Below the pieces are notes generated by a model, which worked only from the letters and a program-made list of their open reading frames with translations, was not told the origin of the DNA and made no database searches. 64,000 bases of DNA, taken from assembly GCA_038496445.1 (NCBI GenBank), contig JALMLS010000627.1, forward strand, positions 124,001 through 188,000. Reading direction: 5' to 3'. Position numbers and translations under genes: made by a program. This DNA is from Trichosphaerium sp. ATCC 40318 (Eukaryota; Protista; Tubulinea). The first letter of the stretch is position 1. Each line of letters begins with the position of its first letter. Of this stretch, positions 49,000-57,228 are shown piece by piece.

Positions 49000-51900
49000 T
49001 TAAGCGGAGAATGTAGCTGTTGCTACGCTAACAAGAGCTTTTACGTCTACCAACCGCGTGCAGAACGAAACTGCAGAGCAGTTAGGTCTACCAAAATTTG
49101 TGTAAATTGTTCCTGAAACTAATGCGCCCGTCTGTGATTTTGCGTGTTGAGTGTGGAATAACTTTGCTTCGATATTATACTCTCCTGGCTGTGCGTGATG
49201 TATCAAATACTCAACTGGACCAAACCCACCTATTTATAGTGATTAGTTAAGCAGTGAAAACAACAAATAATAAAACCAAGTTTTTAAAAGTTCTTACCTG
49301 TAAAATCGCGAGAATGCAATCCACCACTTGGAGTCATATTTCTGAATGCGTTACATTTAGTACCATCAGGTTCTGTGACATGTAGTTCAATATCTGTCAT
49401 ATCACGATGCTAGAAACTCTAGTAAGCTTATTGTTTTGCAAAGTTTTTTTTGTTGTTTGAGAACAAAAAGAGAATGCCCGTACCCATTGAAGTACGATAC
49501 GTAGATCAACATCTAGAGGCTTAATAAGACGAGCATCAATCTTTTCGAATCTGACTTTATCAGTAAGGTTGTTATAGTGAATCTCTTGTATGATTGCATT
49601 AACATCACTAGAATAAAATGTATCAGCACTGTGTTAAGTTTTTTGAGTCATGGAGGTACGTTGTTGCGACCAACTCTATTTGAGAGAATCTATTATCCCA
49701 CTTTCTGGTTATGATATTATTAAGTAATTCAATAGCACGTTCGTAATCCGCTATGGTTTTCTCGGACTGATCAAACATTAGCAACTTGTTTTTTATTTAT
49801 TTTAAGTGCAGTACCTTCATCATTATAGCTAGAGCTAAGTCTCTATGACTCTGTGGTTCTTCTGGGCGCAATTTCAAAACTTTACCAAAGATACGAATAG
49901 CAGCGTGAAGGAATCCCTAAAGTAAAAAGTCAATAATTAGGGTTTTATAGCGAGTGGCAAAGTGTACCTTGAATGTCATTAAAACACGTGCGATTATACG
50001 CAACTGATGAGCATCTTCAAGAGAATTTTCGGCAATATTTGATAATACCATAGCGGCTACTTGTTTATCTCTAGTATCACGAATAACAGATAAAGCAAAG
50101 TCAATAAAATAGCCTGCTTCCTTTTCGTATTTCGTCCTGAATGTAACGTGCTTAGACAGCTTGTTTTCTACTGTCTTTTCGTTGTTAATAGCATTCCAAG
50201 CTGCGCTTTTGATTTGCCTATCGTTCAATTCAACTCTCCATGGGCTATCCTTGTTCGCTGATAGGTCTTCTTTGAGCTCTTCAAATTGCTTGTCATTCAA
50301 TTCCAGTATAGAAACTTTTTGACCTTTGTTTGCCTTGAGTATTTCTTTTTGGAGTCTTTCCTTCAAACCTTTTTCGCAGTAAGGCTACTGTACTTGGCTA
50401 CTTATAAGCGTACCTGGCATCACTTCACCTACTAGCGTGATATTGGCCAATAGGTCAGCTTGCTGTGTTGGGTCACACCGAGCAATGGCGTCCAGAATTT
50501 TCTGAAATGTTGTTAGAGGTGTTTGTACTGTAACTGTAAGAATGTTACCTGGTGTAAACCTTTTTGTCTTGAGCCAATAAAAGATGGTTGGAATATAGAC
50601 TCTGAAGCTCTGAATCTTTCCGTACCTATGATATAATTAATTTCAATTGTAATTAGCAAGAGTACGTACCAACAGTAAGCACTTGACCATCTTCCAATTC
50701 GTAAGATTTTTCTAAAGCTGAAGAAGATGCTGCTGTTTGCATCTCCTCATCAAAATCTGTACAATGAGTCACGTGAAAAAATATCACAAAGGAAAACCTG
50801 TTTTCACTTACCGTAAGACACATAGCATAGTTTCTGTGCAACACCAGATACATCCTTTTTATCCATAAAACCATATCTGACGAAAGAAAAATAAGTAAGA
50901 ATAAAATAAGAACCAACATAATATGACTTTAAAAAGCTTACCCTCTTTCATTCATTTGCTTATTTAGGAGATCAGTGACTTTATTAGAACCAATGGATGT
51001 TCTTTGTCTAGCTTCTTGTATTGGAGCGCCATCAATCATCTGAAAGAAAAAAATGGTTAGCTAAAAAAACCACTTGGTTTGTTTTCTTACTGGAACAATC
51101 TCGCATCCATCTTCTGTCCAGTGAAGTACAAGTTGTGGAGTTTTAATCTCTTTAAGTGATTCAACAACTTCATCTTCTTCTAGTCTCTCAACATAGAGCT
51201 CTTCAGGTTCTTCAATCAACATTTGATTAGATGATACAGCAAGTTCTGCTTTATTGTCGATAGATACTATTGAATCTGGCTCCATGAAATCACTCTCTGA
51301 TTCTTCTTCTTTCTCTTCGCATTCAGGCTCAAAATCAATATCAAACTTCTCATCAAGTTCCCAAATTGCTAAATTGCCGTCTGCACCTGCAGTAGAAAAT
51401 TGAACTGAAGAACGATCTGCTTTCATCAACTGAATAGAGTTTATAGCTCCCTAAAAAAACAAATTTTAGTAAGTACTCCAACAATCAGATGATCTTTCAA
51501 AATGGAAAAAAAGAGGAAAAGGGTAACAGAGAAATTAAAGTAAAGATTTTTGAGTCTTTCTAACCTTATGTGTTGATGCTACCTTCGGTTCAAACCTATC
51601 CACGCCTCTACTATCCATGCTCCTAAACCTACAAAATGCAGACATGGATGATCGTTTAGCTCTCTTTTCTTCTGTTTTCCAAAGACGTTTCTTTTCCTTT
51701 TTGTCTTTCTTTTTCTTTCGGTCTAGTTGGGCTATTTTGGAAGCGGAGGCTTTTTTTGCCAAAGAGAACGCTCTTAACTCGACTTTCGCTGTTTCTTCAC
51801 GTGGCTGTGCTTTACGTCGTTCAAGGTTCTTGTATCCAGAAACATCACTCTTTGAAGCAGACTTCTTTTTCCCCATTGGCCTACTCTCAGGTCTGACTTC

Positions 51901-54900
51901 TTTTTCTGACTTTTTTTCGGCGGACTCTTTTTTTGCCATTTTTCTACCTTTCCTTTTCCTTCTTGGAGCCTTCTTTTTCAAATCACTCGATGTGATTCTA
52001 GACGCTTCAAATAATGATATACTGTCTAATCTCTTATTTTGAGGCATTGATCGTATTTGTTCGTCTTGGCGTGTATCTGCAAGCCTCTGTAAAGATGCAT
52101 TGCTAGTCCGTCGTGCTGGTTTTCTGACAAGTCGCTCTTGCTCGTCAGCACGTGTATCTGTAAATCTTGCAAATGAATCCCTAGCTAGCCTTGATATGCT
52201 GGTAGACCGCACTGGCTCATCCTGACGTGTATCAGCATATCTTACAGCTCCGCTCTTCATCTTCTGTAGTTTGTTACGCATTGGCATAGCTCTTGGTGCT
52301 GCAAATCCCATTGGTGGACATCCCGGCATCGGCGGAGGTCTATTAGGCTGTATAGCTTGGTTTACCATGGCTGATGGACGAGGTGGTGGCGGAGCGTCGA
52401 TCATTGGTATAGGCGTTGCGTTCATTCTAGGAGGAAGTGGGGCACCTCCTAATGCTGGCCTTGCTCTACGTTGCGCAGAGGAGGTAGTAGACGTAGGTTT
52501 TCTACTCATTGGAGCCTTAATAGTTAATATGCCACGTTTAGATAAAGCTTCATCACCAACGTAGCAGTCTTTCTGGCCCATACCAACCTACCAAAAAGTC
52601 AAAAAAAAAAAAAAACAGGATTGAAAAAAACAAAAATGGCTATTCACCATACCATGACACCCATGTGGCGAGGTCTACCTACAATAGCTCTGAATACAGA
52701 ACGTGGTGCGTCATCACCTGCGAATCCTTTTTTGGGGAAGAAGTTGTTAGTAAACTAAAAATACAATGCGATTTTTTTTTTTGTTATTATTATACCTGCT
52801 TTAATGTTAAACAATCCGTTATCAATAACGATAGGGGTAATTTGATCAATGTCAATATCAATTGTATTAAATACCATTGGAGGTGGAACTGGTGGTGGTT
52901 TTGGAGCATTTAGATCTAACAAGCCATAAGCATTTGTATCATCCTGACCATCATCTTGTTTAACCCAATCGAAGTCTATAAGGAGTTAGCAAATGTCCTT
53001 AAATTAGTAACAGCTCTACTATATTGTTCTTTTTCATCAATGCTAGTGTATAAAAACCCGCACTCAAAAGTTTTATAACGGTGATAAGAGTGAAAGTTGA
53101 GTAAATTTTATAGCAGAGATAATGTACCAATGAACTCCATTTCTGGCTTCATCTCAATTGCCCAACATGTAGTGTGACCTCCTTTGGATCCTTCAGTAAG
53201 GTCTACAAAGCCAAGCATAGCAGACTGATAAGCTGGCTTTACACTACCCATATACAGATCGTATTCTGTGAAGTCATAATCGTTTAAAGTAACCAAATGG
53301 TTCGCAACTGGATCTCCAAGAGACTCTTTGTAATAATCTACAAAATCAAGAAACTGAGATGATCCAAAAGAAGTAGAATAAGCAGCATTCCACCAGGCTT
53401 TTTTAAATAAAACGTCAGTACATGTCATCGAGATAAAGACAAAGTTGTTTTACTTCAACAAAAAAAAGAGGGTTAAAAAACCCACAAAGGTGGTACCTAT
53501 TCTTCTGTTCCACATTTGAAGTACATACTGGATTTTCTCTTCGTCTAAATCTCTTTGCTTCTTTTTCTTAACTTCCATGATCTCCATGTACTTCTCATAC
53601 CACTCTATTCGATATTAAGTTGATATTATGGATTGTATTAAACTATCACTAAAAACGAACCTGTCATTGCCTTTGGAGGCTCAATTTCGTACTTCACGTA
53701 TTGATCAAAGTTTTCAAGAACAATCAGAGAAGTATGGGGAGATATGATACCATGAGCACGACCTAGAGCTAAGAATGTAGATATATGCTCCTTCTGCTCA
53801 TCTTCTTCAAGCTCCAACAGTGCTACACCCATACATTAACGCTTGTGCTCACAAAACACAAAGAGGTTTGGTGGTATAAAGAAGAAATCAGCGTACCATC
53901 AATCTTTTTCTTTGCCCAAAATCTAGGTATGAGTTCATCAACGATAATATCTGATTTTTCGGGCATGGAAATCGTAAACTGTTTCTTCTCGATAATCTTC
54001 TGCGCAGTCCCAAACACTTACAAATAAAACGTTATTGACAATCGCTATTTTACTATACCTTAGGCGTACCTAGTGTTATTTTCACTGGTTTGGTGATACC
54101 AGGAAGTGTAGATCCACATAAGGAAAACATGCCGTTCGATTCCAATGTCACCACATTTCTGTAAAAAAAAGTTAGGAAGGGATTGTATGTACAAGAACTA
54201 CCTTGGAAAGAGTTTTTCAGCATCGATTTGTTTCTCATCATATTCTGCGTATAAGAAAGATACTTCTTGTGCACCTGTGAGTTTATTGACTGCCGCAGTG
54301 ATATTATTTGGTTGCTCCTAAGATGTACATTAACACCTTCCTTAATATGACTTTTATCATTTTACCTTTAAGTTGGTGTAGGAACCACCACTGTTCTTTG
54401 CCCATCTCTTAAGTGATCGGAAATCAGCTTTAGCTTCGCAGCTAAATATATGAAGAGGACATTGTATCTAAACATATTAAGCGACAACACCAAGAAGGGA
54501 CAAAAACTAATGACTTTTTGTAATCCAAAAACAAAAAGGTTAAAATCGTACTTGTTGAATAGGCTCGTTTGATAATGAATTAATACCGTTGGTAAACATC
54601 AAAGCGAACATATATTCGCCCGAAGCATTCGGTACACCCATTGCTCTTCGGCTACGAAGGACACGGATATCTCCAAAATCAGTACCTTAAATAGCTTAAG
54701 TTAACAGAACTTATAACAAAAAAATAGCTGGTGAGCCAAAAGCAAGACATACCGCCATCATAAAAAGTATTGTTAATATGGTTTGTAACACTTGATATTT
54801 GTCCTCTAGTAATATTAAACGTTTTGATATCTGTGTCAACCATATTACGAAAAAAGATAACATCAATTGTGCACGTGTTAAAATGCCCAGAAATTAACTT

Positions 54901-56202
54901 GGTAAGGATTGACTGATAAGTGCTAATATTTGCCTTGTTATCTTGAGACCTTGAAGAGTCCCATAGCAAGCAAATATTAGGGTTTGAAGGCATTGATCCT
55001 GTACTACAAAGGCATTAATCTTGAGACTGTACTGGGATTGTTTTGAAAAAAGACGCACGATGACTGAATTGGGATTACGTCAGCAATCGAAAAGTCACAA
55101 GGTTTTGACTCGCTCGCTTTAGAAGCTATTAGAAAACTAGAAGCTGAAAGCTTCAAGGTAATACTATGTGATTTTGGTGCGACTTTCATATTGGTCATGG
55201 AGCTCTGAGCCCGGGAATCCTACGCAGAGGTAAGCGAGCAATTTAATCTATTTTATAACTAAACCACGAACACTATTATTGCTCAAGGTCATGCCCTTAA
55301 ATACTCCTGTGCCTGTTACAATACAATCAAGATTACACCCTTGTGAAGCTGCAATCTAACAGGAAACAAAGTTAATTTCATGACGAGCGTAAGGCGATGG
55401 ATTACGTTGAACATAGTTTTAAACGTATCAATTTTCTCAGTTTGACCAAAAGAAAGTCCTAAATTGTACGAAGCAGACTTCGTACTACCGCCTACACTAG
55501 AGTTAACAACCAAAAAGTAGTGAATATTTTGTACTCTTGACGATATTAAGCTGTTGAAAGTACGTCACACGGAGCTGTCTTGATCCCTTTTGCTGAGTTA
55601 GAAAAAGCAAGATTTGCTTGACAATCTGTTCGTACTTTTTTAGGCACGGGGTAAACACGTGTTTTATATACGTTGCCAACAACTTGCTCTATTATTGAAG
55701 GTGCTGATTTATTCTCCCTTCTCTCTGTTTCAAAGGCAACTCTCGATTTCTCTTTTTCTACAACGACCTGTACAATTGCAGTGAGCAACATAATTATTGC
55801 CAAAATAAGCTTATCCACTCAGGTGAGAGTTTGTGGCTTGGTTTTGGTTTTATTTTGTTTGAATGCTAACGTACACCTTCAACCATCACACCTTTTACGT
55901 CGCAAGCGTATCCACATACAGATGACCCTGTTTGGTACATGAGGTTAATAAATAAAAATAGGTTCGGTTAGAATACCTTCTGTTAGAGGTACCACAAGCT
56001 CTGCTTCGAAAGCTTCGTTCAAATTGTTTTTAAAAACCATATCAAGGGTAGTTTGCGCTAAAAACCCATTTATAACAACCGTGGCAGTTATCTAATAGCG
56101 TTGAGGAATATACAACGTTATAATATCGGTTTTATCTACCTCTTGTAACGGTATTGTTATTCCTCTGTCTTTTACCTCTAAACGAAGTAATTGATCACTC
56201 AT
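49000..56202 (-). CDS. VIT-vWA-[actin N-fragment / Pro-Lys linker / ARPC1 C-fragment / actin core fragment]-TPR-DUF2135(YfaP) fusion protein
   Basis: VIT ([20 protein letters not shown]), vWA ([12 protein letters not shown]|T), HTSLIVLE, actin segments, WD40 blade, TPR ([14 protein letters not shown]), DUF2135 ([23 protein letters not shown]|GFGPVEY). Junctions across the insert are in frame. Confidence 0.85.
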
Positions 56203-56450
56203 TAGTTGTATTATTCGTATACAATGGTTTGACTGTGCAATAGTCTCAAAAAAAAAGTCTTGGTTTTCAGATTCAATGAAAAAAAACTTGACAGAAATTT
56301 TGCGAAGTTGACGGTAAACCAATTCATTGTTTCGCAATGTTGAAGGTTTGTATCATGTAACTTACAAATATAGACAAAAAGGTCGTGCAATCAATATATT
56401 CTGTGGAACACAAGTAGTAAAAAAAGCTGTATGTACATTTGTGGTTTTTT

Positions 56451-57131
56451 TTACTTTTTTTCTGTAAAGCCACCAGTGGAGCCAAATCCACCGCTACCTC
56501 TAGAAGTGTCATCTAGATCTTCAACTTGTTGTACAGGAGGTGTAGAGCATTTCTCTAGGATGAGTTGAGCGACGCGGTCGCCAACAGAAACTAAAAATCG
56601 TTAGCAATTCTGTACTTGATTTTTTTCTCGTTTTTGAGCGTTGCACGCCTTATGCATACACACGAAACTCTACATTCGGTTTTGGATAATGTTAGAAAGA
56701 GTACGCATACCTTTAAAGTTTGTTTGAGCATGGTTAAACAAAACTACGCCTACGGATCCTCTGTAATCTCTATCGATAACACCAGCTATAAAAACGGCGT
56801 GTTAGCAAGAGCGAAAAAACAAAGCGGGAAAAATTTTTCGGCGCGAAGTAAACTAAACAATACGTACCGCCTACATCTATGTGTTGCTTCCACGCAAGAC
56901 CAGATCTAGGAGCAATACGGCCATAATGACCCTCTGGAACCGCAATAGCAATATCTGTCTTCACCAACGCTTTACCTTGCGCAGAGATAACCTTACGTAA
57001 AACTTAAGTTTAAAAAAGTAACGTTTCTAGCTTACGCATTCTTGGGAAGCATACAAATCGTATCCAGCCGCCATATTAGAACCACGTGTTGGCAATTTGG
57101 CTGTTTGAGCGAGTAATTTTACCTTTAGCAT
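56451..57131 (-). CDS. DUT: dUTP pyrophosphatase (trimeric dUTPase)
   Basis: [43 protein letters not shown]. Confidence 0.97.
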
Positions 57132-57228
57132 GAGAATGGTTAGTGTACTTTGAAGTTTGATTTGTTTTCACCGCAACAAAAACAAGTCCTTGGAATTCTT
57201 CACCACTCCATCTTCGAAAGGGGTTTCT

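Follow-up and report, generated by a model that had tools for sequence, protein, structure and literature searches.

A fragment of ARPC1 within the interrupted actin-like domain of a predicted VIT-vWA protein of Trichosphaerium sp.: a candidate tethered ligand of the actin groove

The stretch of DNA analysed here, referred to as the window, comprises 64,000 nucleotides (nt) of Trichosphaerium sp. ATCC 40318 (Tubulinea; GenBank assembly GCA_038496445.1, contig JALMLS010000627.1, positions 124,001 to 188,000 of the forward strand). Its minus strand carries a gene whose predicted product contains a divergent actin-like domain in frame with a putative TPR/DUF2135 tail, and exons of VIT and vWA-like character lie upstream on the same strand. 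This actin-like domain holds a large composite insert, in which two adjoining exon ends, in frame with the domain, code for a remnant of an ARPC1 gene (p41 of the Arp2/3 complex) equivalent to its C-terminal ~65 residues. A previous reading of the letters of this DNA, referred to below as the earlier note, had drawn attention to the peptide; it is present on the minus strand as given there, and the interruption marked in its middle corresponds to a real-looking intron.

Three parts make up the fragment, namely a helix equivalent to the protrusion ('insert') helix of ARPC1, a linker and a single WD40 repeat, and their coordinates are collected in Table 1 with those of the other features of the locus. 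The helix and linker occupy the end of a large exon (52587-51565; 1023 nt, 341 codons, open throughout) which also holds actin residues 43-70, and the repeat opens an exon of 360 nt (120 codons) which also holds the restart of the actin similarity; both exons are symmetric (phase 0-0). The intron between them carries a TACTAA branch-like site ~20 nt upstream of its AG, ends on the acceptor side in ...TTTTTTTAG, with the next exon running from 51450, and would, if 51564-51451 were read through unspliced, meet a stop after 9 codons. The alignment with ARPC1 runs exactly across the 51565/51450 junction.

When the spliced peptide of 67 residues was compared by phmmer with 177,635 distinct PDB sequences, ARPC1A was the top match (6yw7_C, expectation value (E) 4.4e-6; 7t5q_C, E 5e-6), as the earlier note had expected of ARPC1. 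The match consists of a single stretch of 24.4 bits in which query residues 4-63 are aligned with residues 296-357 of the 370 of ARPC1A, and this collinear stretch, which takes in helix and linker together with the last WD repeat, holds two gaps of one to two residues. ARPC1A ranks above all generic WD40 proteins, some of which intervene between it and ARPC1B (E 0.004). These generic proteins (of CFAP52, LST8 and RACK1 type) align with the repeat only, from approximately query residue 28, and the alignment of Utp13 begins at query residue 16, without a match to the helix; ARPC1A and ARPC1B are the sole family to be significantly aligned through the helix. The outcome that the earlier note had considered contrary to its proposal, with generic WD40 proteins as best matches and the helix left unaligned, did not occur, as the ARPC1A alignment covers the helix. 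In comparisons of shuffled sequences with the ARPC1A segment, the helix half, the repeat half and the whole peptide gave z scores of 6.8, 10.3 and 17.6, respectively, and for each of the three none of 20,000 shuffles equalled the observed score.

Neither half is diagnostic alone. The repeat exon on its own returns generic WD40 proteins only (a RACK1-type protein at E 0.034 as the best, followed by Utp13 and CFAP52) and its neighbours in a protein language model are all generic WD40 clusters, and the helix exon piece on its own finds no match. Pfam assigned no family to the separate exon pieces, and the spliced peptide reached 12.9 bits for the WD40 family (PF00400), where a single repeat would need 27 to pass the cut-off. 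It is because both halves are collinear with ARPC1 that the identity can be assigned, and we consider the ARPC1 origin and the gene structure described below to be highly probable.

Local tblastn of the ARPC1A segment places the helix match at 51648-51604. Aligned with NMSAMERFRNMDKR, the window helix has the MSA..RFR.MD.R pattern of ARPC1A and ARPC1B, its best sequence matches, including the conserved Phe (CRFRSMD in the window, ERFRNMD in ARPC1A), whose codon at 51627-51625 aligns with F303 of ARPC1A and F302 of ARPC1B; the M/F/F/M hydrophobic pattern is likewise retained. The linker is of near-equal length, the distance from the MD of the helix to the His of the WD repeat being 14 residues in the window peptide and 15 in ARPC1A, and the pattern F.T.G.DG...IW of the last WD repeat is common to both. 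Unlike ARPC1A and ARPC1B, the window fragment amounts to ~62 of ~370 residues, with six blades missing, is embedded in another protein, and has an acidic tract after it where ARPC1 has its C-terminus.

No WD40 signal was found in any other exon of the gene by Pfam and exon scans, and tblastn of the peptide located neither a second ARPC1-like stretch nor a true ARPC1 gene in the window. Since only one repeat exists, the fragment is not a member of the ARPC1 family. As predicted from its sequence it could not form a seven-blade propeller, in agreement with the statement of the earlier note on a lone WD blade, and without a propeller a place in the Arp2/3 complex would be implausible.

The host gene was modelled from actin homology and GT-AG sites, resulting in 10 exons separated by nine introns (minus strand, 49920-52975), and the joined exons form a stop-free frame of 837 codons. 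Calculated from base composition, a frame of this length would be open by chance with a probability of ~1e-26, and each intron removal restores both the frame and the actin homology. The introns at 49920-52985 of the minus strand are very short (44-69 nt, with one of 114 nt), and CTAAC/CTAAT-like branch sites can be read in several of them.

The N-terminal actin piece is identical to actin 1-70 at 52 of 70 residues (74%), D-loop included. Actin similarity restarts near residue 150, in sequence that leads across an exon junction into MIDGAP, and extends to the actin C-terminus, with ~43% identity over aligned actin residues 141-301 and a much higher value over ~215-268. Residues ~70-150 of actin are undetectable, since model residues 461-549 and the insert do not rise above shuffles when compared with actin 69-165; retention of this region in the acidic part was rejected on the same grounds, although a structural remnant may persist. 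The nucleotide-binding loops are degenerate (DNGLFN for DNGSGM, and HWTEDG where the second loop, DSGDG, aligns), and the groove side of the actin-like domain is poorly kept, with the position of actin Y169 read from the alignment as Ala. The earlier note had placed the ARPC1-like piece between two actin halves; the piece is indeed flanked by actin parts, but it sits in a composite insert of ~435 residues which replaces actin ~70-150.

Beyond the actin end, the last exon continues as one open frame into a TPR-like part, of which the signal is weak in Pfam and exon scans. The join of the VIT exons to the actin region was made by reading and lies outside the 837-codon model, and Pfam, applied exon by exon, did not detect vWA. 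Nothing was found when the window was scanned for Rfam families and tRNAs. The upstream same-strand neighbour (~56450-57170, minus strand) reads by eye like a dUTPase (..AAGYDLYA.., ..GVIDRDYRG..) split by short introns.

Table 1. Features of the interrupted-actin gene, by position in the window, in the direction of transcription
Feature	Position	Strand	Basis or remark
VIT domain exons, upstream part	55549..56091	-	Two exon pieces score 23.1 and 22.2 bits for PF08487 (cut-off 26.5)
Exon: acidic/Trp stretch, PKPPPVPPP, actin start	52796..52975	-	5' end approximate; acceptor inferred from GCTAAC...TTATAG by reading
Exon: actin residues ~19-43	52653..52726	-	Actin alignment
First part of the 1023-nt exon, with actin residues ~43-70 up to the break typical of the family	52507..52587	-	Actin alignment
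Pro-rich tract directly after the actin break	52282..52479	-	
Three ADTRxDE repeats	52003..52251	-	Middle repeat agrees with eEF2 switch I at 12 of 13 residues
Lys/Arg-rich stretch (29% Lys) upstream of helix, same exon	51652..51981	-	Without a match to any family or to the PDB
ARPC1-like protrusion ('insert') helix, 14 residues	51607..51648	-	9/14 identical to ARPC1A 296-309
Linker between helix and WD repeat, 14 residues	51565..51606	-	Exon end at AAG/GT
GT-AG intron inside the ARPC1-like segment, 114 nt, phase 0	51451..51564	-	Donor AAG/GTTAGA
Single WD40 repeat (GAINSIQ...AIWEL), equivalent to the last ARPC1 repeat	51355..51450	-	phmmer, shuffles, Pfam WD40 12.9 bits
Remainder of repeat exon: acidic stretch (31% Glu), then actin similarity from ~residue 150	51091..51354	-	
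Six exons, actin residues ~165-375	49920..51039	-	Actin alignment
DUF2135 exon, 3' end	49003..49233	-	PF09906, 21.7 bits (cut-off 22), whole profile 1-48; outside 837-codon model

Read from 5' to 3', the insert consists of the Pro-rich tract, the three ADTRxDE repeats, the Lys-rich stretch, the ARPC1 helix, linker and repeat, and a Glu-rich stretch. For the ADTRxDE region all 17 of the PDB matches at E<=10 are eEF2, the best having an E value of 0.17, which is not significant alone; the stretch of switch I matched by the middle repeat is the Thr56/Thr58 region. These repeats could be another captured fragment or a mimic of a kinase site. On the whole the insert looks like a patchwork, the sources of which would not be only cytoskeletal.

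The large exon (339 residues) was searched by HMMER against 1.84 billion representatives, among which no orthologue was found. The search did reveal ~25 short open reading frames (ORFs) in which the actin piece has the same derived ending, GILT(L/M/V)(K/R)SPFER, followed in each by Lys-, Pro- or acid-rich sequence. The break falls at the same actin residue throughout, reading SPFER in these relatives and APMSR in the window. Their contigs are unannotated eukaryotic DNA from metagenomes together with one GenBank assembly. PARP_reg and VIT exons lie upstream of the actin piece in loci L004 and L007-L009, and L002 reads by eye as a PARP catalytic region with VIT. Since a phosphofructokinase gene lies downstream in L004, L008, L010 and L011, these appear to be orthologous loci in several genomes. 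In L002 (9160-11320) the exons of the actin N-piece (AGFAGE..GRPRHQ, GVMVGMGQKD..) occur twice in tandem, ~1 kb apart, as a local duplication within the gene.

What follows the break in the relatives is a series of recognisable motifs which recur across several genomes (L004 8107-17581; L007/L008, L009, L010/L011; L001-L003). WH2 motifs exceed the Pfam cut-off in three independent loci (39.8, 28 and 23.4 bits); L009 has a WASP-type C motif with an acidic-Trp motif, and L004 an acidic-Trp stretch and, after its WH2 region motifs, an actin C-terminal tail. A synaptobrevin SNARE motif occurs in L004 (33.6 bits) and in L003 (50.6 bits, in the same ORF as the actin piece). The loci further contain heptads of the type found in the C-terminal domain (CTD) of RNA polymerase II (Pol II; Pfam Rpb1 repeat, 30.1 bits in L004), and L004 has calmodulin-like EF-hand exons. 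A tail resembling that of the ribosomal P-stalk (EMGFGLF) is present in L004, L008 and L009 (23.2 and 16.8 bits, below the cut-off), and FH1-like poly-Pro is also among the features after the break.

To judge from these comparisons, the window and its relatives share an interrupted actin and a style of insert. In common with the PARP-VIT-vWA loci (L004 and L007-L011, and also L001-L003), the window has conserved actin residues ~19-70, the same break, a poly-Pro stretch before the actin start, and Lys-rich, Pro-rich or acidic inserts after the break. The two differ in that PARP_reg is present in those loci, whose available DNA does not include the actin 150-365 part, and in that they carry WH2-C-A, SNARE, CTD and P-stalk-tail motifs without an ARPC1 piece, none being found in any relative locus by tblastn; the VIT and vWA exons of the window do not match theirs and its tail is of TPR and DUF2135 type. 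Since the relatives carry WH2 and C motifs at the same break, the insert site would seem to be one used for conserved actin-binding peptides.

Several candidate counterparts of these motifs were considered and rejected. SSMS-type strings in L001, L003 and L004 were rejected as helix remnants and put down to chance in low-complexity sequence, as the inserts are alike in composition only and gave no ARPC1-like tblastn match. Of a WASP-type C helix and acidic Trp module, the window has only a Trp followed by an acidic run after the repeat. A WH2/thymosin-like motif in the window has no Pfam support, and a P-stalk-tail-like motif was dismissed with a local E value of 0.01 against L008 and no PDB match. 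A sequence at 52857-52975 (minus strand), just before the poly-Pro and actin start, bears a weak likeness to the acidic-Trp and P-stalk-like tail of L008 (local tblastn E 0.01; PDB search null).

In ARPC1 the Phe of the protrusion helix inserts into the mother filament's barbed-end groove and is needed for filament binding, and mutation of the equivalent yeast residue lowers both filament binding and nucleation (Ding et al. 2022, PMC9295785). The description of this helix by the earlier note as the part in contact with actin at Arp2/3 branch junctions thus holds for the parent helix, and the Phe is kept in the window copy. The note had further argued that capture of a second cytoskeletal gene fragment speaks for selected function. 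The fragment is derived from ARPC1 and includes the actin-binding part, yet the argument is weakened by the presence of the eEF2-like repeats and by the possibility that the helix is a passenger.

We propose that the working part of the fragment would be the amphipathic helix, with its hydrophobic positions M, F, F and M and the key Phe kept, and that the helix, borne on a flexible tether of Lys-rich and Glu-rich sequence, may serve as a ligand of the hydrophobic barbed-end groove of conventional actin. Binding would follow the model of the helix at Arp2/3 branch junctions and that of WH2 and C helices, and the helix would act beside the Pro-rich tract and the D-loop face, which is strongly conserved in the actin piece that the protein itself carries. 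By such means a VIT-vWA protein may attach itself to monomers of actin or to the barbed ends of filaments, and its single WD repeat would be a relic or spacer. The actin-groove function taken by itself is tentative; the explanation as a whole, an ARPC1-derived fragment acting as a tethered actin-groove ligand in a VIT-vWA actin-like protein, is the best available, with a probability of roughly 0.6.

The window helix may be compared with other ligands of the barbed-end groove, namely WH2, the WASP C helix, the Arp3 C-terminal tail and the actin D-loop. With these it shares a short amphipathic helix, a flexible tether and a Pro-rich neighbour; the ARPC1 parent helix binds the same groove, and in the relatives the corresponding site is occupied by true WH2 and C motifs. 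The presence of such helices for the same groove at the same site makes the groove reading reasonable, without proving it. The window helix differs from them in having no sequence relation to WH2, the Pfam WH2 family does not match the window, and binding by the window copy is a prediction. With regard to the host protein, Dictyostelium filactin, primate POTE-actin and Arp5/Arp8 are proteins in which an actin-fold domain forms part of a larger protein or contains large inserts. The window gene resembles them in having an actin fold within a multidomain protein and in tolerating a large insertion, and it differs in that actin ~70-150 is undetectable, the DNGLFN loop is degenerate and the insert holds fragments of other genes.

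A number of observations weigh against this proposal. As the groove residues of the protein itself look degenerate, binding of the groove in cis is unlikely. The insert that holds the ARPC1 piece also holds an eEF2-like motif, which has no known actin link, and neither a regular-expression search nor Pfam found WH2 on the gene strand of the window's insert. Because the fragment represents the 3' end of ARPC1, that is helix, linker and last repeat together, the helix may be a passenger carried by position. An AlphaFold2 model of the repeat exon was uninformative, with a predicted local distance difference test (pLDDT) value of 37.5. No orthologue or paralogue of the ARPC1 piece emerged when the repeat exon, the exon at the actin/TPR junction and the spliced peptide were used as queries in word-index protein searches, and two metagenome scans and one genome-contig scan found nothing beyond actin pieces. 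Finally, of the words sampled from 50400-53000, only 10-12% occur in each of two sequencing runs that carry the label of probable RNA.

Several of these points bear on the alternative that survives best, which is that a disordered linker of low complexity, tolerant of any sequence, took up a 3' piece of ARPC1, as it may also have taken up the eEF2-like fragment; the piece would then be functionless and recognisable only because the capture was recent. A contiguous C-terminal end rather than a precisely excised helix, flanked by Lys-rich and Glu-rich sequence of low complexity, accompanied by a non-cytoskeletal eEF2-like motif and absent from every relative, is consistent with such a neutral relic, as is a lone WD repeat without a known fold of its own and with the low pLDDT value reported above. 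The frame is nonetheless kept over 341 and 120 codons with the internal intron intact, the helix keeps its critical Phe and its pattern of hydrophobic residues, and the equivalent insert in the related loci holds motifs conserved across several genomes, which argues that the site is not a neutral dump. We consider a neutral relic to be unlikely, although it has to be taken seriously.

It is a good deal less probable that the ARPC1 helix is one of several short, lineage-variable mimics gathered in one disordered region of VIT-vWA proteins, where they would lure the ligands of the mimicked proteins, possibly effectors or toxins of pathogens. The mimics proposed under this idea are, in the window, the actin D-loop, eEF2 switch I and the ARPC1 helix, and, in the PARP-VIT-vWA relatives, calmodulin, the VAMP SNARE motif, Pol II CTD heptads, WH2-C-A and the P-stalk tail. 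In its favour are the Pfam-supported Synaptobrevin, WH2, Rpb1 repeat and EF-hand matches of the relatives, which lie in the region of the actin piece and recur in several genomes, and the EMGFGLF tail, albeit below the cut-off; each piece is moreover an interaction motif and not an arbitrary segment of the protein it resembles. Among those parent proteins are several classic targets of toxins or docking sites. If effectors and toxins of pathogens are among the ligands, such an array of baits would represent an integrated-decoy system outside plant NLRs. The idea is, however, purely comparative, the eEF2 match is not significant, and the window host belongs to a different VIT-vWA subfamily, which lacks a PARP domain and whose VIT and vWA exons are unlike those of the relatives; an ordinary function in the assembly of actin would account equally well for the WH2-C-A and Pro-rich parts.

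That the gene model is wrong, and that a pseudogene, separate transcripts or a mis-assembly underlie it such that no such protein is made, appears very improbable. In favour of such an error, the locus has no protein in a collection of 15 billion proteins, and the word shares in the probable-RNA runs are low. Against it stand a frame of 837 codons that stays open through nine short introns of canonical type, each of which restores frame and actin homology on removal, the sharing of exons between ARPC1 and actin pieces, and the branch-site-like CTAAC motifs read in several introns. Chance resemblance, in which an ordinary degenerate WD40 repeat is preceded by a fortuitous ARPC1-like stretch, would accommodate the behaviour of the repeat and the helix when searched alone and the subthreshold Pfam score, but is largely refuted by a database-wide E value of 4e-6 with ARPC1 as the only family significantly aligned through the helix, by 9 of 14 identities in the helix half alone (z 6.8) and by a helix-to-repeat spacing within one residue of that in ARPC1A.

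A literature search revealed no paper on VIT-vWA-WH2-actin fusions, on proteins of the type encoded by the PARP-VIT-vWA relatives or on DUF2135, and an ARPC1 protrusion helix inside the pseudo-actin of a VIT-vWA protein is undescribed in the searchable literature. The kinds of event and protein behind the patchwork, gene-fragment capture and actin-fusion proteins, are themselves known.

Should the helix work as a tethered ligand of the actin groove, the gene would amount to a natural experiment in which the minimal groove-binding element of the Arp2/3 complex has been excised and reused on a flexible tether in a pseudo-actin, showing that the ARPC1 protrusion helix can be moved between proteins as an actin-binding module. 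More surprising than the ARPC1 fragment itself is its family context. This consists of unannotated VIT-vWA genes, some with PARP, in which a copy of actin is broken at the same residue and the gap is filled with conserved interaction motifs from other proteins. These VIT-vWA interrupted-actin genes could encode new actin-assembly factors or an array of baits.

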